Position numbers and translations under genes: made by a program. Below are positions 13,340 to 47,759 of a stretch of 64,000 nt of DNA, one piece after another. Numbering within the stretch: position 1 is the first letter of the stretch; every line of letters begins with the position of its first letter. Source of the DNA: Rebecca billardiae RCC1528 (lineage: Eukaryota > Protista > Haptophyta); assembly GCA_965240325.2 (NCBI GenBank), contig OZ251240.1:62001-126000 (forward strand), read 5' to 3'. Below the pieces are notes generated by a model. That model made no database searches and was not told the DNA's origin. It saw nothing but the letters and a program-made list of their open reading frames with translations.

Positions 13340-14254
<915 letters not shown>

Positions 14255-14325
<71 letters not shown>

Positions 14326-29514: not shown

Positions 29515-31326
29515 TGGCCCGCGGTGCAGGGCGGAGCGCGCAGCGTGGAGCCCGCACCAGCGGGCCCGAACCACGTTTCAAAAAGATCTTTGATCAAAGA
29601 AAAAAGGGACGGGGGACGATTTTCAGGGCTGGAGGAGACCGAGTTTCGAATTTTGAGACTCCCTTACAGGTGCATCCTCGTCGAAAAAGGGCGCGTCCGC
29701 CGTCTTGAATAGTGAACAGAGGAATCAACGAAACCCACGCCCAAGTGTGCCAGGCAGGGTAATTGTGGGTAGACTCTCCTTAATGTAGTGTGACCATAGT
29801 AAAATAATATGGCCTCGCCGCTGCAAGATGCCAAGAACGACCGTTGACATTGAATCGTCCAACCAACTCCAATAGTGCGAGAGATTGAAAATACCCGCCG
29901 CAGCTATCCGTATAGTCGGAGCCGGAGGGGGCGCGGCGCGCGGCGTGTGCGGCCCGCCCCTTTCGAGGCTATTTTCGTCTTCGTTACGAGCGCGATTTAA
30001 AGCAGTATGAGATTGCCGCCAACCGCCAACCGATAAAAACGGCATTCAAGGAGCGACGACGTTTGATGATCGATCAAATGTTGATCGCGCAACCACAACG
30101 CAATCTTCATACTATCTCGTCCCTTGATGAATACTGGATACGGCCTTCTGAGCTCTGGAGTCGTCGCCTCGCCGCCTCGGCCACTGCCAGCACAGCCGAA
30201 CGAATAAAGCGAACGGAGGCCGAGCGGCGGCCCGCTGCGGCAGCGCACGATCGTTCAATCCGACGGACTCAGCGCAGGTGCGCGCTGCTGCGGCGGGTAT
30301 CCCGACGGTCGTCAGCGTCGCTTTCGTGCCCGCTCACCCCGCGCGCCCCGCCCTGCCGATCCCTCTTCGGCCCAGTCAGTGCGGTTTCCAACCGAGCACC
30401 GGACCGCGGACACGAATCGATGTCGACGCTCGCGCGCGGAGAGCAGTCGGCGACGGTACGAGGAGGAGACCGCGGGGCATCCTAACGCGTGAATCCATGC
30501 GCGCGCCCGCGCGCGCCACGCCGCACGCCGCGCAGCTGAACTCTCGGCATGTTCAAGCGCGGGCGGTCGCGAGGACGTCGCGGTTCAGCCGCGTCTCGCC
30601 GAGCCTGATCTGCAGTGCGGAGCCTTCGCCTGATCCAGTCGGCGTGGTGCGAGCGGGTAGTCTTGGACGTTTTGTCGGGATGTGGAGCAGCCACCACGGC
30701 CATCTCGCTCGCCCAAGCCCTCGCTCGCGCCGTCCATGGCCGAGCTGTGATGGCTCATCCGCGTGCGGCGTGCTGACTGACCGGGTGGAGCCTCTGGCTG
30801 CACATGATGCAGCGGCGCGGCAAGCAGCGCGCGCAGATCTGCGGGCGACGAGACTGGGCGAGTCCGAGTCGCAGCACGAGTTGGACCACGCGCACATCCT
30901 TTTTGCTCTCGTCCGCCGCATCCGAGCTGTCTCGAGTCTCGACGGCTTGACTGGCGCATGGGCGGGCGTTTCGCGCGCGAGCTCGGAGCTCGGACTGCGC
31001 CGCTGACCGTGAGCGGCGGCTCTCACTCACTCAGTGACTGAGAGCCAGCTCTGGCGCTGATGGGCACGGCGGATGCCTGACTGCCTGACACGAGAGCCAC
31101 AGGCTGATCTGCGAGCGGCGAGTCCGCGCGACGATGGCGAGGTTAGTGGCCGATATGCGACTCCGGGGCCGGACGCCGCGGCTGTGTCAGTGTGAGTGTC
31201 CGTGGTGGTCGGACGGAGCGGGTGGCACACCGCACAGACTGTCAGACGGCCGGCACAGACAGACTCTGCACCGCGGGCCCCCAACTACGTTGGTTCTGAC
31301 GGAAGAGGACCGCGGAACGCGGTCAT
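29515..31326 (+). mobile_element. Non-autonomous family A element (Helitron2/HINE-like)
   Basis: 5' ggcccgcggtgcag (29516-29529) with a perfect inverted subterminal copy at 31266-31279. 3' hairpin gaccgcg-gaa-cgcggtc (31308-31324). Ends shared with 45194-46809. Confidence 0.8.
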
Positions 31327-31511
31327 ATATATATATATATCGCGATCGGCGGCCTCGCCGCCGTTTGTCACGCCTACGAGGCGGGCGCGCGAGTGACGCG
31401 TGCGGGCGCCGGGCAGCGGCGACCCGCGCCCGACGATCGGCCGACGGCCGCGCGGCGGCGCATCCGATCGACTGCTGACATCGATGATGCTGATGATCGA
31501 TATATATATAT

Positions 31512-32311
31512 CCCCTCTTAGACCACAGTGTCTAACGAGAACTTTAGTCGGGCCAACCGTCGGCGGCCCTTGGCAACATGGCCATTGACGGCCGGTAGAG
31601 GCCGGCAGTAAGGCAGGATCCAGGCGGAGGCTCTCACCAGAGTTGGCGGCGCCGCGCGCGCCGCGCGCGCGCGCAAGGAGAGACACCATTCGGATCGTAG
31701 CTGGCAGCCAAGGGCCCAGTAGGCAGCCGAACGCGTGAGGCCTCGGAGAGAGGTAGCTGGCAAATGGAACATCCAGGACGTACAAACGTACACGGATGCA
31801 GCCGTACGGGCAATACGTATGATGCAGAGGTACACTGTCGCGCGACAGGAAGAGTGTGAAGTACGATCAGTCATCGCCGCCGCGCGCGCGCGCGCGCGCC
31901 AGTGCAGAAGGGAGAGGACAGGCGGAGCCGGGACCAAACGCGGAGCCCACGAAGGCAGAGGCTCGTGCGACACACGAGGATCACACGCCGCACGAGGACC
32001 GTGGCCGGGTGCGGCCCCCGAGCAGCGGGCAGAGGCGACCTACCGACGGTCGCCACACCGAGTGGCAGCCATTTCGTCCTGCGGCGAAGTCTTGCGGCCG
32101 GGCGCGCCTCCTGCGCCGCGCCCCTGGCGCGGAGCGTGGACGGGCGCAGGTTTGCGCCTCGCGCCGGCGCATCTTGGGCTCAAGCCCGTCGAAGAGCACG
32201 TGTTTGCGTCGCGCTTCGAAGGAGGGGGTTGGCAGCTCTTGTGGAGGAGGGCTCGGCGCGAGACGCAGTCGAGCAAGGGTCGCCTCCTTCCACAGGAATC
32301 AAAGCTCTTTC
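31512..32311 (+). repeat. Split direct repeat A1
   Basis: Matches 38983-39782; translations are identical in several frames. Confidence 0.95.
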
Positions 32312-33356
32312 TGTTGGTTTGGTTAAGATTGACATTGTATAGAGGGCGACATACATTGTATCCTCCGGGTCGAGAGTCTCGACAGCTGCGTTGAACAATC
32401 GTGTTGAGTGACGATGCTGTGTCTGCGGTAGCTCGCGAGCTCCGCCCAGCGCGCCTAACTACACTGGACCTTGCGGCGGACGCGCTCATCAGTGGAACCA
32501 CATACGATGAGTGTACGCACGCACAGAGCAAGCCCAGAGGTGGGTAGGAAGCCACTCAAGTACGGGTTTGGCAGGCTTAGAAGCTTTCCTTGGAGTTGAC
32601 GATGTTAAATCCCACGTTACAGTGACGATCGAGGTAGTTGGGCCTCCTGCATCAGGCTGTGGAGGTTGAGTGACGACACTGTGCTTGCGGAACTGCTCGC
32701 GAGCGCCGCCCAGTTGATTTACTCAGCTGATCAACAATCGATGCATAGGGTATACAGTATGGGGAACGATCTGCTCGGGGTAGAGAGTCTTGAAAGCCTG
32801 TAGTGGGCCCAAAGTCTTTCCCTCTGGAGTTGGGCAAGTACCGCTGATACAACCGACTACCGAGCCAAAACATCACGAACTGAGCTGAGAGGGCTGCGTT
32901 GGACATTCAATAAACTAACGTGAAAGAGTAGGCTGTTGACATTCAATCAAAAGCCACTCCAGTAGCGGTTCACTGTTCAGCCTCTGTGCTGGTGACTCGC
33001 GGGGTGTAGGGGGGCGGTACCGCCGCTTGCCCAACCCCCACGACTCACTTAGACCCACCCCCCGGTAGGGACGCCGACTGACGATTCAGATGCGACCCGT
33101 CTTTATCTTCTGTCTGTGTCCCTGCCGGGGGAACAATTCCCGCCGGGTGCAAGCCGTGGAGCACCCCTCAGTGGCAGTCGGCCGATACTGGGTTAGGGGG
33201 GCGGGTAATAAATCCCCTGAATACGTCGCCGTGGAGCAGAGAGAGTGGCGAACTCGCTGTCACGTTGAAAAAAAGAACAGCCCTCTTACTGTCAGCGGCA
33301 GCAGTAGGAGCAAACGGACCGCACTATCCCCGACTGGGGTCCTGCGTAAGGCAAAT

Positions 33357-34872
33357 ATGACTAAAGCTTCTGTTTCCAAAACTACGCGTAACCAAGGGGG
33401 CCGGGCCGCGCCTAAACAGGCGGCGCGCCGCGAGCCATCAACAAGGAAGAAGGTACCGATCCGAGAGGAGAACGATTCGGATCACCGGGGGGAAAACGAT
33501 TCGGAGGTGGATGATCAGGATGACGATGACCAGGAAGAGACTACTTTCCAGGAGGGTCGGGTGATCAGAACGATTGAACCACCTCTCCAGGTGGAAGACA
33601 TCGTCCCCCAAACGAGGAACGACGTTGACTATGAAGTAGATCCCAACGCAAGGAGAGGGCGGAAAGGATCACAGGCGGGGCAAGCAGGAGCTGCCGCCCG
33701 CCCGCGCGCCACCAGGGCCGAGACTCGGGGTGGTTCTCGCGGGGAAAACAATGCCCGTCGTGCAAAGGCCGCACAGTCAACCCCGCCGGTTGCAAACCGT
33801 GCAGCCGGCGCTGACAAGAAACGGAAAGGCCAGGCAGATGAAGGTCGGCAACTCAGGCAGGGGCCCCTGTCGAATAAACGACAGCGGGCGGCCACGCCAG
33901 AGCCCGACAAAAATGGTGACTCAGGCAGTGATTCCGAATTAGGCGAAGATACGGACGATGACATTCCGAGGGGGGGAGTATGAAGACGACGAGTTCCTTT
34001 CTGGTCGGGAAACCGAAGTCACTCCGGTCACAAAAAAGAGACGGCGCAGGCCCAAGCATCGAGGCGGCAAGAGTCGCAGAGGGACACTAGCCGGCAGCGA
34101 GGGCGAGTCACAATCTGGCTCTCGGGCGGGCGAGGATAGCCTCCGGGGAGCCGGGCTACTACAGTCGATACCACCACAGCTAGGGGGCATGGGAGGACCC
34201 TTGGCTGGCCCGGGGCCATTGTCGAATTTAGCCATCCAAAACTCGCTGCAGCAAGCACTGACAGGGCAAGCGATCGCCCCGATTGTGGCCCTGCAGGCTT
34301 ATCTGCCCCAGACAGCAAACATGCTGGACGATGCACAAATCACACACGGGGCTGATGGATCAGTGCAAACGAAGTTTAGCGTGCGAGCGGCACGGCGCAT
34401 TCGCACACTCGAAGATTTTGTCATAGCATACTCTCGGTTTCTTCGCAACCAACACCAGGCGGACATGGGCTCCATCCTCAAGGCAGCCCTCGAGCACCTT
34501 GAGCGAGTGGCGTCTATGTCTCGGAATCACAACCCACAAACAGCCGTGGCGTACGACGAATTAGTGCGGATGCACGCGGGGGAGACCGGCTTAATGGGCG
34601 AACTGCAGTATGCTTTCAACTCTGAGGCAATGACTACGGCCATCACGAAGCATAATTTCCGCGGCCCGCACGAGTCAGGGGGCGGTGGAGACGGCGGGCC
34701 GATCTGCCGCCTATTCAACAAACCGGGAGGCTGCTCATACAGTAAATGCAAATTCGCACACAAATGCACACGTTGTCAGGGGAAATTCAGCAGGGATGTC
34801 AAATATTGTCCGAGGTGCGGCAGCGACAAGCCGGGCAGGGATCCGAAGGGGAGAGCCAAAACGGACGGCTAG
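33357..34872 (+). CDS. Gag-like ORF1 with C-terminal CCCH + Cys zinc finger; split by a 1-nt shift in a G7 run (33970-33976)
   Basis: PICRLFNKPGGCSYSKCKFAHKCTRC. Removing one G fuses DDDIPRG to EYEDDEF. Confidence 0.8.
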
Positions 34873-34880
34873 TCCACTAG

Positions 34881-36815
34881 CCCGATCATTCGACCGTAAC
34901 CTCACCAGCAAGTAATCATCCCGCCCGGCAAGATAGTTGCAACATCCCCTCAGCAATATCCGACGACCCCCTGCTCAACCCCCCTGAGCCAATTCCACAA
35001 TGTCCAGTGTGTAGTCTAGCATGTTACGACTGTGCGTGCCAGCACAGTCAATTTTACGATAAAATCTACCGAGGCTGCCCGCTCTTCGACGCACGGGCGA
35101 GTTCGCGGCAGCTCCTCCCGCCAGGCGACAGCACCGACGAGGCAGCACATGTTACAAGATACGTGGTGGCATGTGTGTACAGCGGTTTTAGCTGCTTCCC
35201 GGGACTGGCGTCGGCGGGAGGCGACGATCCAACATACTCGTTAGCGCAGAGCAGCCTCGCCCATTGTGATCAGTACAATTATGATTCAGTGCACAAACAT
35301 CGAGACAAGGCAGCAGACCAGGTCGAGGACTGGCTCAAAAACGGATGGGCGGTGCAAGCTGAACCAGATCGCTCTGTTTTTACGCCCCTCCCCGACGGCT
35401 CAGTCAGGCACGACCGGCTCTGTGTCACACCTCTCGGGGTGGTCCCGAAACACGGCTCGTACGATGAAATCCGCATGATATTTGACTGTCGGCGCTCCGG
35501 GTTGAACGAAACTATACCCGATATTCCGTTTCGCTACCGCGAAGTGAATCACGCGTGTAAGGCTCTGCAGCCAGGTTATTGGATGGCGAAGGTGGACATT
35601 AAAAGTGCGTTCCCACACATTCATCTCCGTCCAGACGACTGGCGACACTTGGGCTTTGCCTGGCAGGATGGGTTCTGCCACATGACTCGCATGCCTTTCG
35701 GGGCAAAGAGTGCGCCGTATGTATTTTCACTGGTCGGAGATGCAGTTCGCCGGGCCTTCATGGCAATCGCTCCCGACGGGGTAGTGGCACTAGTCAACTA
35801 CCTCGACGATTTTCTACTGATCTGCAGAGACAAAGCCTCGTGTGAGGCGGCACTGGAGGCTTTTCACGCGCTCCTGGCCAAACTCGGCCTGGTCGTGAGG
35901 GAGGATAAGACAGTGCCGCCGACCCGTCGTTGTGAGTTTTTAGGAGTCGTCCTCGACTCGGTGAAGTGCGAGCTGACAGTCACCAGGGAGCGGCTTACCA
36001 ACGTAAAAATCGAAATCGACAGTATTTTGCGGCGGCGGACGGCGGCGTCAGTGGCTCAGCTTGAGTCCCTGTGCGGCCGACTAGGCTGGCTCGCGCGAGC
36101 CAACCCTCGGTGCCGTCCGTACCTACGCCGCTTGCTCGTGCTCGTGCACGCGCGCGCGCGCGGGACGCAGCGCGCGCGCGCGCGCGCGCGCGCGCGCGAC
36201 GCGAGTCAGCAGACGACGACGAAAATAGCGAAGCGGCGCGACGGCGCGGCGAGGAGGGGGACCAAAAACCTGCCCGTGCGCTTGTCCGCAACAACAAAAG
36301 ACGATCTGCGCTGGTGGGCGCGCGCGGTGCGCCACTGGCAGCCGCGCACATTGTTTTTAGAAGAACGACCTAAGCCTTGCGTAGCCGTTTTCTCGGACGC
36401 CTCGGACAATGGCTGGGGCGCCACTGCACACGGCGAAGATACATTTGGCACTGGGTTCGCACAACATTCCTTTTCACACATCTACCCAAAAGAATTATAC
36501 GCGGTAGTCCGCGCCGCACAACGCTGGGGGCCGAAGTGGAAGGCCCAAAGGGTGCTTGCCTTTGTGGATAATAAAGCCGTCGTGGACTCAATAAACAAAC
36601 ACTCGACCCGGTGCGCCGAGACTCTGCCACTCTTGCGACAACTGAATCTTCTGGAAGTACGTCATGGATTCCTTCTCCGTGCTACACACATTAGCGGCGT
36701 AGACAACGACTACGCAGATGCCCTGTCCAGAAAGGACAAGTGGCATCTCATTAAAAACATCCGCAAGCCGCCGCGGCGCGTGCGTCGCCCGGCGGGACTG
36801 TGGAACAAATTCTGA
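34881..36815 (+). CDS. Reverse transcriptase-RNase H (DIRS/Ngaro type)
   Basis: PLGVVPK, KVDIKSAF, MPFGAKSAP, YLDDF and EFLG motifs. RNase H motifs SDAS, KELYAV, VDNKAV and NDYADALSR. Frame is open from 34881 with no early ATG. Confidence 0.95.
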   Translation, partial: PDHSTVTSPASNHPARQDSCNIPSAISDDPLLNPPEPIPQCPVCSLACYDCACQHSQFYDKIYRGCPLFDARASSRQLLPPGDSTDEAAHVTRYVVACVYSGFSCFPGLASAGGDDPTYSLAQSSLAHCDQYNYDSVHKHRDKAADQVEDWLKNGWAVQAEPDRSVFTPLPDGSVRHDRLCVTPLGVVPKHGSYDEIRMIFDCRRSGLNETIPDIPFRYREVNHACKALQPGYWMAKVDIKSAFPHIHLRPDDWRHLGFAWQDGFCHMTRMPFGAKSAPYVFSLVGDAVRRAFMAIAPDGVVALVNYLDDFLLICRDKASCEAALEAFHALLAKLGLVVREDKTVPPTRRCEFLGVVLDSVKCELTVTRERLTNVKIEIDSILRRRTAASVAQLESLCGRLGWLARANPRCRPYLRRLLVLVHARARGTQRARARARARDASQQTTTKIAKRRDGAARRGTKNLPVRLSATTKDDLRWWARAVRHWQPRTLFLEERPKPCVAVFSDASDNGWGATAHGEDTFGTGFAQHSFSHIYPKELYAVVRAAQRWGPKWKAQRVLAFVDNKAVVDSINKHSTRCAETLPLLRQLNLLEVRHGFLLRATHISGVDNDYADALSRKDKWHLIKNIRKPPRRVRRPAGLWNKF

Positions 36816-36820
36816 GCTTA

Positions 36821-37849
36821 ATGGGCAGGCCACCGGCAGGCCCAACGAGGAAGGTATCTACGTTGAAACAATTAGATTCAGTGGTCGCGACCGTGGTTCA
36901 GGCGGGAGTGGAGGCAAATACAACTCGGTCGTACAATACGGCAGTCAAGGCGTGGCTGCGATTCTGCGGCCAATACCATCTACGGCCGGATGGGTTTCAC
37001 ATTAACAAGCAATTTGAACGGTTTGCTGGGTTCCTGCTGGCCGCTGGGAATTTGGCAAATACGGTAAAGACGTACACAGGGGCGGTCCGAGCTTGGGCAC
37101 GAGCGAGAGGTTATACCGTCTGCAAACGTAGCTTCGTTGAAAAACGGATCGTACAGTTTATAGAAGCGCAACACGGAAAGACCCCCCTAAGGAAGCGGGG
37201 ACTGACGGCGGCTCAACTTTCGCCAGTTTGTGCTCGGCTGAAGTTGTCCCGAGCGCACCAAGATAAGATGTGGCTTGCATTAGTCACTGTGGCGACATTC
37301 GGGCTACTGCGGTCTGAACATTTCTCTGCAGGGGGACACTCTGCTGTGGGGCAGGGTACCAGAATCATACACTGGGACGACGTGCTTTGGGACACAACGG
37401 GAAAAGGGATATTTATCATTCTACACCGTGGCAAACGACAGCGCGAGCCAGTGGGCGTCTGGCTACCTAAGCTCACCAACACTTCAGGGGTGTGCTGCCC
37501 GGTGCGGGCACTGCGAGATTGGTGGCAGTACAGTCGCGCACGCCTCCGACGAGGTGAGGTACCGTCGGGGCCAGTCTTTAGTTCAGCCAAGTCAAGAGGC
37601 TGCCCCCTACCATATGAGGAGGCGCTAGGGTGGGCACACGCCCTCGGAGTCTCCCTGGGGTTGGGGGGTACGGCCCTCGGGACACATACATGGCGGCGTA
37701 CAGGGTTATGGCTGGCAGAGTCGGCCAAATTGACGGAGGACGACTGCAAGCTTATTGGCAGGTGGCATTCGGGCGTGTGGCGATCCTACTCGTCTCAGGC
37801 TTTGCGGCGAGGCCAATTATGTGCTCGAATGGCAAAAGCACTCGGCTAA
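36821..37849 (+). CDS. Tyrosine recombinase
   Basis: GLLRSEH (R), RGK (K), THTWRR (HxxR) and IGRWHSGVWRSY (W, Y). Confidence 0.93.
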   Translation: MGRPPAGPTRKVSTLKQLDSVVATVVQAGVEANTTRSYNTAVKAWLRFCGQYHLRPDGFHINKQFERFAGFLLAAGNLANTVKTYTGAVRAWARARGYTVCKRSFVEKRIVQFIEAQHGKTPLRKRGLTAAQLSPVCARLKLSRAHQDKMWLALVTVATFGLLRSEHFSAGGHSAVGQGTRIIHWDDVLWDTTGKGIFIILHRGKRQREPVGVWLPKLTNTSGVCCPVRALRDWWQYSRARLRRGEVPSGPVFSSAKSRGCPLPYEEALGWAHALGVSLGLGGTALGTHTWRRTGLWLAESAKLTEDDCKLIGRWHSGVWRSYSSQALRRGQLCARMAKALG

Positions 37850-38447
37850 GGCTAGGCACTGGTCAGACATTGCGATTGATGCAACCGACCACGCCAAGGC
37901 TGGAAGCAAGCCCACTTGTCGAGTTATACACACGATCATAGATATATATATATTTAATTATTTAATGCATCTATTCACATATGACTCATTGACCGTTCCT
38001 GACAGTGCGTCGAGTGGCGGGACAGCAGTGGTCGCTAGCGTTAAACAGTAGTTGTGTTGTGCATTTTGTCAAACGATGACAGTCATTCGTGCTGACGGAG
38101 AATGTGCATCCCCCCCCCCCCCCCCCCTTGCCCTGCTCGCACAGGTACTTTGTACTACCGGATGCACAAATCGCATGCCAGTAGACATACAATCTATATT
38201 GTTATTGTTTGGGAGAGTGATCGAACCAGGAGCCCAACTCAGGCGGGAACTAGCAGTGTGCAGCCGAATATTGTGAGTAGTTTTTCCATCGATGACCACC
38301 ATCGGTCCGTCCGCTCTACATGTGGGGGATAAACTGGACAGTGCGGTCAGAAGCCCTGGCTAGCGATAGTTGTTGCTGGTCCGATATGGAAGAACCGACC
38401 GACACAGTGATACTTATCAGTGTGTCGCTCCGGTCCATCCGGTTTGG

Positions 38448-38968
38448 GGGAATCGTTGTCTGTTGCCCAAGGTATCCACAGTCAGTGGGTCCCTGGCAAA
38501 AGACAATGACGAACAAGCATATACTATCGCTTACTTCAGCGGTGACCATGGAGTCCGACTCTGCCCCAAAGAAAGCGGACGAATCATCGGATGGAACATT
38601 GCTGGTTCGGCATCAACATCAATATCAAGACTAGACCGCCCACAAGTTCAGAGACACTGTAACTTGCTTGAACAAACATTGGGCTCACCAATCGACCACT
38701 CCCGCGAAGCCGAGGTCAAATGTACAAACGTTGATGAACCTCGTCTCGCGGTGAGCCTCTGCTTTCTGCTTGCTCGCGTAAGGAGATGGCGGAGGCAAAG
38801 CCACTAACAATAACAAGGGCGCTCGGGCTGAAAGGCCCGGGCGTCCGCCCCCACACTCGTTCCGGTCGGGGGCCGCACATTAAAGCAAGGACGCAGTGGG
38901 GGGAGCGGGAACTTAGGCGCGCGCGCGCGCGCGCGCGGTAGTTTGCCAGCTGAGGACTAGCAGTGTTA
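38448..38968 (+). repeat. Split direct repeat B1
   Basis: Matches 39955-40475. Confidence 0.95.
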
Positions 38969-38982
38969 TTCTATCCGACTAA

Positions 38983-39782
38983 CCCCTCTTAGACCACAGT
39001 GTCTAACGAGAACTTTAGTCGGGCCAACCGTCGGCGGCCCTTGGCAACATGGCCATTGACGGCCGGTAGAGGCCGGCAGTAAGGCAGGATCCAGGCGGAG
39101 GCTCTCACCAGAGTTGGCGGCGCCGCGCGCGCCGCGCGCGCGCGCAAGGAGAGACACCATTCGGATCGTAGCTGGCAGCCAAGGGCCCAGTAGGCAGCCG
39201 AACGCGTGAGGCCTCGGAGAGAGGTAGCTGGCAAATGGAACATCCAGGACGTACAAACGTACACGGATGCAGCCGTACGGGCAATACGTATGATGCAGAG
39301 GTACACTGTCGCGCGACAGGAAGAGTGTGAAGTACGATCAGTCATCGCCGCCGCGCGCGCGCGCGCGCGCCAGTGCAGAAGGGAGAGGACAGGCGGAGCC
39401 GGGACCAAACGCGGAGCCCACGAAGGCAGAGGCTCGTGCGACACACGAGGATCACACGCCGCACGAGGACCGTGGCCGGGTGCGGCCCCCGAGCAGCGGG
39501 CAGAGGCGACCTACCGACGGTCGCCACACCGAGTGGCAGCCATTTCGTCCTGCGGCGAAGTCTTGCGGCCGGGCGCGCCTCCTGCGCCGCGCCCCTGGCG
39601 CGGAGCGTGGACGGGCGCAGGTTTGCGCCTCGCGCCGGCGCATCTTGGGCTCAAGCCCGTCGAAGAGCACGTGTTTGCGTCGCGCTTCGAAGGAGGGGGT
39701 TGGCAGCTCTTGTGGAGGAGGGCTCGGCGCGAGACGCAGTCGAGCAAGGGTCGCCTCCTTCCACAGGAATCAAAGCTCTTTC
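38983..39782 (+). repeat. Split direct repeat A2
   Basis: Matches 31512-32311. Confidence 0.95.
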
Positions 39783-39954
39783 CCGCCCACCCGCCCGCAC
39801 GCATTTATTTTCGTTGTTACGGGATTCCATCAACCCGAATAAACAGGGCAGCGGTGCTTCTTTTCCGGCGAGCAAGCCGAGCCTGTTGAAGCCAATGAAA
39901 ACGGCTTCAACAACCATCCTTGTTAACCAACGGACCGACGACAATTGGGGAATC

Positions 39955-40475
39955 GGGAATCGTTGTCTGTTGCCCAAGGTATCCACAGTCAGTGGGTCCC
40001 TGGCAAAAGACAATGACGAACAAGCATATACTATCGCTTACTTCAGCGGTGACCATGGAGTCCGACTCTGCCCCAAAGAAAGCGGACGAATCATCGGATG
40101 GAACATTGCTGGTTCGGCATCAACATCAATATCAAGACTAGACCGCCCACAAGTTCAGAGACACTGTAACTTGCTTGAACAAACATTGGGCTCACCAATC
40201 GACCACTCCCGCGAAGCCGAGGTCAAATGTACAAACGTTGATGAACCTCGTCTCGCGGTGAGCCTCTGCTTTCTGCTTGCTCGCGTAAGGAGATGGCGGA
40301 GGCAAAGCCACTAACAATAACAAGGGCGCTCGGGCTGAAAGGCCCGGGCGTCCGCCCCCACACTCGTTCCGGTCGGGGGCCGCACATTAAAGCAAGGACG
40401 CAGTGGGGGGAGCGGGAACTTAGGCGCGCGCGCGCGCGCGCGCGGTAGTTTGCCAGCTGAGGACTAGCAGTGTTA
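39955..40475 (+). repeat. Split direct repeat B2
   Basis: Matches 38448-38968. Confidence 0.95.
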
Positions 40476-40478
40476 GGG

Positions 40479-41303
40479 TTCTAGCCGCCACTCCGCCATG
40501 CCCGGCTCGTACAAGGCGTCGGTCGTACGACTTGACTCTGGAGCTGGATGGTCGCGGCGCGCGGCGTTGTGGATGAGTAGACGGCCACGCCGATGATATC
40601 ATGGAATAACGATCAGGTTATAGCTATGTTGGGCGGATTTGAGCAACGAACGACAGCGGGCGCTGGCAGCGGCGTGGCGGTTGAGCTGCTGCCCGAGGTC
40701 GAGAGGGCGCCCACGAGTCGTCAGTCACTGAGCAAGGTCGATTAAGGCGGATGGCTCGCTGACACTGCAGTGCACGTACGCGTATGGAACCCATTCCATA
40801 TCCGCCAGAGGCCGAGGGTGGGCGGGCGGTCAAACGATGAAGCGTCGGCGGGTTGACGCGACAGCGGCGAGAGCAAGAGGCCATTGCATGAGGGGCGACG
40901 CGGCGAGGACAGATGACGTCGTCGTGCCGCCGACGATCGGGCGGGGAGCCGGGCCACACAGACAGCCAGCGACCTTACCGAGCAGAGGGGCTGCGGCGAC
41001 TGCGGTGCACCTCCTGCAGCGGAGAGTGCACCCGGCAGTGCCCGTGATGCAGGCGATCCCCCTGCCCAGCTCGGCGCCTTCGTCGTGGGCAGCCCGATGT
41101 CGCCCGAAGAGCGAGACCTGATGGCCACGATGGGCGGTAATCAACCGAGTCCTGCGGGTGCGCCGCTGTGTGCCGGATTGGCAGCGCACCAGGACAGTCC
41201 TGCGCGCGGCGGTGCGCGCGGGACCGCAACGCAGGAATGCCATGCTAGCCGGATTCTTGGCGTCGCTCATAGACACTCAGTTATAGGTTCCCTATAACGC
41301 CAC
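40479..41303 (+). mobile_element. Family B element, near full length
   Basis: Starts ttctagccgccactccgccatgcc (compare tgtctaaccactccgccatgcc in the 13.4-kb copy). 3' hairpin gttatagg-ttc-cctataac (41280-41298), then gccac+ATAT. Confidence 0.8.
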
Positions 41304-45193: not shown

Positions 45194-46809
45194 TGGCCCG
45201 CGGTGCAGGGCGGAACGCGCAGCGTGGAGCCCGCTCCGTGGGCCCTAACCACGTTTCAAAAAGATCTTTGATCAAGAAAAAAGGGACGGGGGGCGATTTT
45301 TAGGGCTGGCGGTGACCGAGTTTCGATTTTTGAGACCCTCTCTACACATGCCAAGTGACATGCATTACGGAGAAATAACCGCGTCCACGACATTCCCCTA
45401 TTCAATCGATGGACGGGACGTGAGCGGCCGTGACTTTAACGTAACGGTTCGTTACGAGCGATTTAGTTTGATAGTGAGATTGCCGCGAACCGATGTGACA
45501 ATGTACGTCCCTTGAATCAGTTGATCAACTATATTCAATCGCGCCCTATCTGTATCAGGAGCCGACAAGGCAAGGGTCAGTAGCAGAGGGCCCAAGCTCG
45601 GCGTATATCTCAATACTATCTGACGCGAACGGACTTGGTTGGGCGCGCGCGGCCGCGCGCGGCCCCGGGCGGCGGCCCACCAGAGGCGGCCCGCGTTTGG
45701 AGGCGAGCCACGGGCACGAGGCTCACAACCGACGGGTGAGGACGGCGATGGGCAGGTGCGCGCGGCGAATGGCGCCTGGAGCGCGCGGCTGCGGCGGGTC
45801 CCGACTGCCGTCGACATCGCGTTCGTCGTGCCCCCGCTCACTCCGCGCGCCCCCGCCGCCCCTGCCGCCCTGTCGATGCCTCGGCGCGGCCTTGCGCGGC
45901 CCCGGCGCGTCCGCGAGCCGCGGCGCCGCAGCCGCCGCCCTGTGTTCGGGCTCTCGCAAGCTCGGGGGCAGCGGCGCCTGATGCCGGACTGATCGATCTC
46001 TGAGCCTTCGACTTCACCACGCGCCGCCCTTGCCATGCCTTTCCGGGGTCTCCCAGAACTCTTCTTGATTGAGAGAGAGCAGGCGCGCCGACGATCCGAG
46101 TCCATCGTCGGTCGACTCTGAGCGAGGGCTACGCCTCGGAACTGAACGGTACTCTACGAGGAGGACGAGCTGCGCGGGCGACGGTGGTGCGTGACGTCCC
46201 CAGAGCTGGCCGTGCCTCTGCAACGCGTGCCGAGCCTGATCGAGGTGTGTCAGCTGCCCGTGCACGCGCGGCGAGTGCGCGAACCGGATCACCGGTGCCC
46301 TCGCACCTCGGCACCGTGCTCCCTCGGGCTGTCAGCTCCGCGTGGCCTGGCGTGCACGTAGAGTTGCGCTCATGCGTCGATCACGCCTCGCGCCCGCCTG
46401 TCGGCCGTCGCGCAGGCGCTGGTCGAACCCTACTCGGACCAGTGCATCATCCCGGGCGCTGCCGGCGCGGGGGGTGACCCCGGGGACAGCGGTCAGCAGC
46501 AGCGGCCCGAACGAATCCGCGGCCCCGCACCGTGCTCCCTGGCTGTCAGCTCCGCGTGGCCTGGTGTGCACGTGGAGTCGCGCTCATGCGTCGATCACGC
46601 CTCGTCGCATCCGCCTGTACACAATCGGCGCCGCGCCGGCGGCTGCAATGGGCCCGCCCGGCGCGGCGGGCGGCGGCGCGCCGCTGGAGTCTAGTTGTAC
46701 GGGCATATGCAACTGGTCTGTCAATAGACGACTGCGACGGAGGGTGCACCGCCACCGCGGGCCCTGAACTACGTTCGTTCTACGGAAAAGGACCGCGGAA
46801 CGCGGTCAT
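45194..46809 (+). mobile_element. Family A element, second copy
   Basis: First ~140 bp closely match 29515 onward. Subterminal caccgcgggcc at 46753-46763 and the same hairpin at 46791-46807. Internal ~78-bp direct repeat at 46312 and 46528. Confidence 0.8.
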
Positions 46810-46919
46810 ATGTACTATTATTGCGCCAGCGGCATCATATATATTCATCCTGCTATGCTGGCATCACCAACGACGAAACCGCGCGCATCCAGCATATATG
46901 CTGATTAATATATATATAT

Positions 46920-47759
<840 letters not shown>

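Follow-up and report, generated by a model that had tools for sequence, protein, structure and literature searches.

The window analysed here, a stretch of 64,000 nucleotides (nt) from the haptophyte Rebecca billardiae RCC1528 (G000:C23:62001-126000), carries at positions 31512-40475 a tyrosine recombinase (YR) retrotransposon of a family whose copies sit at the edge of A/T tracts. In the window this element lies between a TA tract and the 5' end of an element of a second family, named family B, and a preliminary description had proposed that the retrotransposon may target family-B ends in the manner of an attP x attB system. This proposal did not hold, since only one of nine right ends abuts family B and the other eight flanks are unrelated to it, but the insertion rule on the left side turned out to be family-wide and real. 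We consider it probable that a Ngaro-like retrotransposon targets A/T-tract edges, that the window copy used a family-B junction as an ordinary target and that its right end is aberrant. In a search of the complete assembly (72 Mb in 41 contigs, ~72% GC), the start of the element's repeat A had 29 matches and the end of its repeat B had 20. The sample of termini comprises 17 left ends and nine right ends (the window copy, seven close copies and one divergent copy), and both ends are known for only six copies.

As described before, the element is built of split direct repeats, arranged as A1-[gag, RT/RNase H, YR]-B1A2B2 (RT, reverse transcriptase; Table 1). A1 does not differ from A2 at any of 800 positions, nor B1 from B2 at any of the 521 positions ending with CAGTGTTA, which amounts to zero differences over 1,321 nt. 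Traits of the DIRS order are the presence of a reverse transcriptase (RVT_1, with a YLDD motif) and of a tyrosine recombinase in place of a DDE integrase or endonuclease; Pfam scans of the element revealed neither an rve nor an endonuclease domain, and the RT_RNaseH match (E 0.004) was weak and under the curated cut-off. The order gag, RT/RNase H, YR and the split direct repeats are traits of Ngaro elements, and the other copies are laid out alike. A methyltransferase domain was not found by Pfam scans, an absence that reaches as far as the sensitivity of Pfam; split direct repeats of the form A1-[open reading frames (ORFs)]-B1A2B2 without a methyltransferase are the Ngaro layout (PMC8547959, PMC7192593). 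By repeat layout and gene order, the window element is assigned to a Ngaro-like (DIRS-order) family of tyrosine-recombinase retrotransposons, of which it is a young copy. Its gag-like ORF is frameshifted and lies in two frames in the ORF list (33090-33983 and 33958-34872). The frame breaks at a G7 run (near 33970, 33966-33976): two other copies have GGGGAG here, and the GGGGGGG of the window exceeds this by one base.

The sequence of the recombinase alone matched no Pfam or PDB entry, and the identity of the protein was therefore only settled by a deeper alignment. An exhaustive HMMER search gave 316 homologues; in an alignment of 60 sequences R171, K212, R299, W322 and Y330 were invariant and H296 nearly so. 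PF00589 was carried by 29 of the 60 homologues tested and a SAM-like N-terminal domain by many. The family profile matched Cre over its full length (E 2.5e-25), and the AlphaFold2 model (pLDDT 87.8) had Cre structures as top matches in Foldseek (E 1.5e-9, TM-score 0.68-0.75). Profile and modelled fold agree that the ORF of 349 amino acids (aa) encodes a Cre-like tyrosine recombinase with an R-K-H-R-W-Y catalytic set.

The left ends of the family read ...ATATAT|CCCCTC in 15 of 17 cases and AAAATAA|CCCCTC in the remaining two, and the (TA)n flank that had been noted for the window copy is thus a feature of the whole family. The ATATAT ends comprise five with exactly GATATAT, three with G(AT)4-6, three with T(AT)4 and four with longer tracts, two of them of more than 70 nt. 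The last six bases left of the element were A-W-A-T-A-W without exception (17/17), giving the consensus A-W-A-T-A-W|CCCCTC. ATATAT precedes 0.49% of the background positions in the window, for which 15 of 17 corresponds to a P of about 3e-33. None of eight right flanks started with ATAT, compared to 84% expected for random positions within tracts (P about 5e-7), and right of the terminal TAA there were two to four further A/T bases at most. Tract lengths at the insertions resembled the number-weighted and not the length-weighted distribution of runs. Since the right flanks do not continue the tract and the run lengths follow this distribution, the element sits at the tract edge, with A1 facing the tract. 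A target duplication was not consistently found in the six paired flanks; only ATCG in one copy and TGCTG at a TGC-rich locus were observed. Site-selective insertion without target duplication, as proposed in the preliminary description, is therefore confirmed.

In the trinucleotide model (PMC3266345; PMC7192593, which cites Poulter and Goodwin), 3 bp at the joined ends recombine with a matching genomic 3 bp without target duplication, and the element comes to be bordered by the trinucleotide on both sides. In the family studied here the trinucleotide on the right is TAA (once TAT), whereas on the left it is TAT in 15 and TAA in two copies; the joined ends have a single TAA. The left/right pairs were TAT/TAA in four copies, TAT/TAT in one and TAA/TAA in one, and TAA/TAT was never seen. 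The pattern suggests, if faintly, that mismatched overlaps are resolved in one direction, but five or six cases are not enough to establish it. The family thus obeys the known trinucleotide rule with TA(W) and needs, in addition, at least three further A/T bases on the left.

The right end of the window copy differs from all others. In seven other copies the outer B2 ends with CAGTGTTA-TTCTATCCGACTAA, once ending CCGACTAT, and is followed by ATCGTCG (C19), ATAACTG (C11), CTAGCAT (C16), GCTGCTG (C39), GAGCAGC (C1), ATAGCGC (C7) or TGAGCAC (C25); the divergent B end is followed by TATAATGGGCAGC. BLAST of the flanks found family B at none of the eight non-window right ends, and these flanks are mutually unrelated. 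Seven other copies carry TTCTATCCGACTAA at their outer B2 end; it is therefore no junction insert but the regular 3' end of repeat B. The internal B1/A2 junction (38961-38988) reads CAGTGTTA-TTCTATCCGACTAA-CCCCTC and the right boundary of the window copy (40468-40502) CAGTGTTA-GGG-TTCTAGCCGCC-ACTCCGCCATGCC. The two strings compared in the preliminary description are indeed present in the DNA, but the right boundary had been misplaced there, TTCTATCCGACTAA being the normal terminus of B. The right join is parsed as CAGTGTTA-GGG-T-TCTAGCC-GCC-ACTCCGCC, in which TTCTAGCCGCC is the 5' terminus of family B itself, carrying a GCC micro-insertion. The window thus holds the single copy without the 14-nt B terminus, joined via GGG to the canonical family-B 5' end, (G)TCTAGCC. 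The family-B 5' end on its right, as first described, was confirmed for this copy; the ttcta.ccg.c similarity, which had been taken as a target signature, was found at no other insertion site and links the lost normal B terminus with the family-B terminus. Tabulating the flanks of the genomic copies revealed the expected enrichment of (TA)n on the left but no enrichment of family-B 5' ends on the right.

Decay of the B2 terminus by point mutations was rejected, as it would demand three substitutions and an insertion within 14 nt compared to zero differences in 1,321 nt; the absence of substitutions in the repeats argues that the aberrant end arose in one event and not by slow decay. We infer that this event may have been the imperfect integration of an intermediate that was incomplete or, following a canonical insertion at (TA)nT|G, a small deletion at the microhomology TCTA, from TTCTATCC to GTCTAGCC. 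Two other origins were dismissed. A recombinase crossover inside the shared TCTA word should have left its reciprocal product at the left junction, where it is absent. An insertion of family B into the retrotransposon end is contradicted by the missing 14 nt, which were not found past the family-B 3' end, and by the greater age of family B.

Family B, with at least 173 candidate copies, has the canonical 5' junction (TA)nT|GTCTAGCC-ACTCCGCC, with ATC between GCC and ACT in one copy, and at least 20 further copies read (TA)nT|GTCTAGCCACTCCGCC. (TA)nT was always present on the 5' side and ATATA on the 3' side in 27 of 28 cases; the copies considered include those of the window at 13438-14256, 40479-41293 and 46920-47570 and the loci L051-L079. 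The configuration (TA)n+TGTCTAACCACTCCGCCATGCC, which had been described before as an empty arrangement on the minus strand, was recovered at 14222-14262. The family-B unit at 40479-41293 ends on its 3' side with CTCATAGACACTCAGT, a hairpin and CGCCAC, followed by ATATAT. It is 91-93% identical to other copies, which makes family B older than the retrotransposon. Since family B carries a TA tract at its 5' edge, which is an ordinary target for a tract-edge element, the adjacency of the two elements in the window is not special.

A mechanism that would connect these observations starts with the copying of the RNA into DNA and the joining of the ends, by which the B|A junction ...CCGACTAA|CCCCTC... 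would be recreated. The Cre-like recombinase would then recombine this junction with a genomic site, without target duplication. The genomic partner would be the edge of an A/T tract with A-W-A-T-A-W left of the crossover, usually (AT)3 or longer and twice AAATAA, and the TAT or TAA of the target would match the TAA of the element junction, extending the trinucleotide rule to a TA tract. The (TA)nT at the family-B 5' end would be an ordinary target of this kind, on which the window copy landed.

The alternative that bears most directly on this mechanism is that ATATAT or GATATAT is added to, or carried by, the 5' end of the integrating DNA and that the real target is only loosely A/T-biased. 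Exactly GATATAT precedes A1 in five independent copies and G(AT)4-6 in three more, the G at the tract start is enriched (8/13 short cases versus 18% in the background), the right flanks are without a TA tract, and TA runs in this retrotransposon family expand and contract fast, as the internal tract demonstrates. These observations weigh against a tract-edge target; the common GATATAT may indicate a longer specific motif or added sequence. On the same side stand that no true empty site, neither an allele nor an exact paralogue, was recovered, so that ATATAT could come in with the element, that the sample of right ends is small with nine in all, and that circular intermediate and crossover position come from the published model. 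Two candidates for an empty site were discarded: in the A+B pair at 46700-47570 family B is 5'-truncated, so that the pair is no exact paralogue, and around the C1 copy the similarity of the flanks to family B is confined to 65 nt, 40 nt from the insertion. However, the internal B1|A2 junction, which is the template of the joined ends in the accepted model, reads GACTAA|CCCCTC and lacks ATATAT. In the A-repeat tree the flank types (GATATAT, T(AT)4, AAAATAA, long) are intermixed, with the two AAAATAA copies in different clades, and inheritance of the left tract with the element was rejected because the tree did not cluster by flank type. Moreover, some of the adjoining tracts, those of more than 70 nt, are too long to be carried, and the tract in the window stands where every family-B copy has one. 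For these reasons the tract is regarded as target DNA, and a tract brought along by the element is unlikely.

The two further explanations concern the position beside family B. If the family-B left junction, i.e. the TA tract plus GTCTA(G/A), were a preferred pseudo-att site, owing to its resemblance to TTAGAC/GTCTAA at the start of A and to TTCTAT at the end of B, insertions should be enriched at family-B ends. One of nine insertions does lie exactly at a family-B 5' end, and such ends probably make up <1% of the TA-tract edges (at least 173 copies versus ~0.5 TA runs per kb in the window); furthermore, the motif CTCTTAGAC..AGT is common to the start of A and to subterminal family B, and TCTA.CC.AC is common to the B terminus and the family-B terminus. 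But this case was selected for its adjacency and, as a single case, carries little weight, and of the nine right flanks eight show no relation to family B. With ~0.5 TA runs per kb in the window and a few hundred family-B ends, the chance of at least one family-B adjacency among the characterised insertions is estimated at 3-7%. In addition, the window copy is joined to the left of the TCTA word, with the GGG filler, and not inside a spacer for a recombinase crossover, the left junction is devoid of the reciprocal product mentioned above, and the similarity of the motifs only reaches a p of about 0.04. A preference for family-B junctions is accordingly very improbable. Still less credible is that the element inserted canonically elsewhere and that some unrelated deletion or rearrangement later placed it beside family B, which would make the adjacency uninformative on integration. 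The non-canonical right end with its 14 missing nt and GGG filler would fit such a history, as would the micro-insertions that are common in non-coding copies of this genome (GCC or ATC in family-B 5' ends), but the break is at most one base away from the first nucleotide of family B and the left flank is the TA tract of family B, so that a canonical insertion at (TA)nT|G plus the loss of ~14 nt is a far smaller event. The zero divergence of the repeats also leaves little time for large rearrangements.

The words TTAGAC and GTCTAA, which the preliminary description had reported as shared, are indeed present in repeat A and in family B. Repeat A starts with CCCCTCTTAGACCACAGTGTCTAACGAG, and its beginning, CCC-CTCTTAGAC-CACAGT-GTCTAA-C-GAG, may fold into a hairpin of 9 bp with a single bulge (z-score -1.9). 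The 5' end of family B carries GTCTA(G/A), and CTC(T/A)TAGAC-ACTCAGT directly precedes the 3' hairpin of this family; another family-B-like element carries CCTCTTAGACAATCAGT. The start of A (31512-31541) resembles the family-B-type arrangement CTCTTAGACACTCAGT...hairpin...CGCCAC|GTCTAAC (41262-41293; 13438-13480, minus strand; L026:1460-1500). However, local alignment of the junction regions against shuffles gave p 0.04 for one family-B copy and was not significant for the other, and BLAST detected no extended similarity between retrotransposon and family B. The shared words are real yet statistically weak, too little for claiming shared recombination sites, although such sites are conceivable.

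With 5' GTCTA, subterminal TAGAC words and a 3' hairpin, family B was compared with the asymmetric inverted repeats of Helitron2/Helentron-like elements. Of its arrays seen end to end (n = 20), 12 were exact head-to-tail dimers with the junction CGCCAC|GTCTAGCC and eight were monomers; with dimers as the modal form, a miniature split-direct-repeat retroelement (A1B1A2B2) fits better than a rolling-circle element. One could go further and regard family B and the retrotransposon as one guild of tyrosine-recombinase retroelements with a common TTAGAC/GTCTAA word near the joined ends, in which the family-B left junction (TA tract, GTCTA) is a favoured landing site and the enzymes of the coding element or a close relative might mobilise family B. 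We hold this to be quite doubtful.

Across the genome, the recombinase was found at 97-100% identity in seven places including the window; of these, six span the full length and keep the ORF intact, and one is partial. Five distant paralogues with 26-31% identity (G000:C5:423295, C20:1653845, C17:970856, C37:595943, C1:42450) mark other tyrosine-recombinase elements. The copies comprise full-length elements, solo A-B units, A-B tandem extensions and truncated or interrupted forms. A complex array at G000:C25:925700-942348 (L009-L011, L016, L039-L041, L049) contains extra A-B units ~1,520 bp apart; all its internal junctions read CCGACTAA|CCCCTC, as multimeric intermediates or unequal crossing-over would give. 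Among six copies of 94-100% identity (window, L003, L007, L010, L013, L016), the internal (TA)n after the recombinase has lengths between about 10 and 21 nt, which shows fast microsatellite change; this tract is a possible self-target. A scan of metagenomes for relatives gave no match; a relative, P0002, is 53% identical.

Three A repeats are interrupted: L026:1460-1510 (G000:C16:274050), L022/L029 (G000:C32:37374-40311) and L024/L025 (G000:C7:152497-164933). One of these interruptions is a family-B-like element at position 34 of A, indicating that nesting between the element families goes both ways. A further family, 'family A' (29515-31322, 45400-46810), has the hairpin end GACCGCG-GAA-CGCGGTC with a TA tract directly after it, and its 3' end is also located a few hundred bases from other retrotransposon copies (L019, L048); TA tracts thus collect several element families. 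Fragments of families A and B lie a few hundred bases from other retrotransposon copies, as in TA-rich transposon nests.

Table 1 Features of the retrotransposon and of family B in the window (positions within the window).
Feature	Position	Strand	Remarks
(AT)6 tract	31500..31511		G before it at 31499; CCCCTC follows directly at 31512; read as target half-site
Repeat A1, 800 nt	31512..32311	+	CCCCTC, then hairpin-forming CTCTTAGAC-CACAGT-GTCTAA-C-GAG
gag-like ORF	33090..34872	+	C-terminal CCCH-type zinc knuckle and zinc ribbon; Pfam zinc-ribbon matches weak
RT/RNase H ORF	35007..36815	+	YLDD motif; Pfam RVT_1 E 8e-17, above curated cut-off
Tyrosine recombinase ORF, 349 aa, predicted Cre-like	36800..37849	+	N-terminal SAM-like core-binding domain and catalytic domain
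Internal (TA)n tract	37941..37955		directly past the recombinase stop codon; length differs between copies
Repeat B1, 535 nt	38448..38982	+	includes true 3' terminus TTCTATCCGACTAA at 38969-38982
Repeat A2	38983..39782	+	match to A1
Repeat B2, shortened	39955..40475	+	stops at CAGTGTTA; without the last 14 nt present in all other copies
GGG filler	40476..40478		aberrant right junction; absent from canonical B ends and canonical family-B 5' ends
Family-B element, single unit	40479..41293	+	5' T-TCTAGCC-GCC-ACTCCGCC compared to canonical GTCTAGCC-ACTCCGCC
Second family-B copy	13438..14256	-	uninterrupted (TA)n|TGTCTAACC 5' junction

Among the closest known systems are Ngaro elements such as those of Cafeteria burkhardae, which share split direct repeats, the order gag-like, RT/RNase H, YR, the lack of a methyltransferase and solo A-B units (PMC8547959). 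There, too, the host is GC-rich and insertion is non-random, including insertion into or beside other mobile elements. Unlike the family described here, the Cafeteria elements prefer integrated virophages, which was attributed to ORF1, and no sequence motif was reported (PMC8547959); in R. billardiae a short motif, the A/T-tract edge A-W-A-T-A-W|, is the target instead of any particular element of the host. DIRS1-like elements recombine 3 bp at the joined ends with the genome and make no target duplication, as here, but DIRS1 has inverted terminal repeats plus an internal complementary region, and its trinucleotides are mostly NTT (PMC3266345, PMC7192593). In the family from the window, by contrast, at least six bases are constrained on one side, and the left and right trinucleotides often differ (TAT versus TAA). 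With Cre and other simple tyrosine recombinases and with Tn916/Tn1549-type integrases the enzyme shares the two-domain Cre-like fold and the R-K-H-R-(W)-Y set, but there is no evidence for a lox-like symmetric core at the crossover, and it presumably acts on an intermediate made by reverse transcription. Tn916-type integrases tolerate non-identical overlaps and prefer A/T-rich targets, which would fit the TAT/TAA mismatch. Microsatellite-specific retrotransposons without long terminal repeats (non-LTR elements) use a simple-repeat tract as a safe landing site, by target-primed reverse transcription with an endonuclease. Both they and the family described here make use of simple-repeat tracts, the latter with a tyrosine recombinase and in a compact GC-rich genome. 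A limited search of the open-access literature found no description of TA-microsatellite targeting by such elements.

Target choice and cutting by tyrosine-recombinase retrotransposons have hardly been tested experimentally, and the specificity of the DIRS-1 recombinase was described as uninvestigated (PMC7192593). The family offers a short donor site, CCGACTAA|CCCCTC, a short target rule, A-W-A-T-A-W|N, and several intact recombinase genes, and it is young; these features make direct biochemistry with oligonucleotides feasible. The window copy lies beside family B because TA tracts are used by both elements, and not as the result of targeting. The TA-tract rule explains TA microsatellites as nests of unrelated-looking elements in this GC-rich haptophyte genome, and such nests call for caution when parasitism of one element on another is inferred from adjacency.

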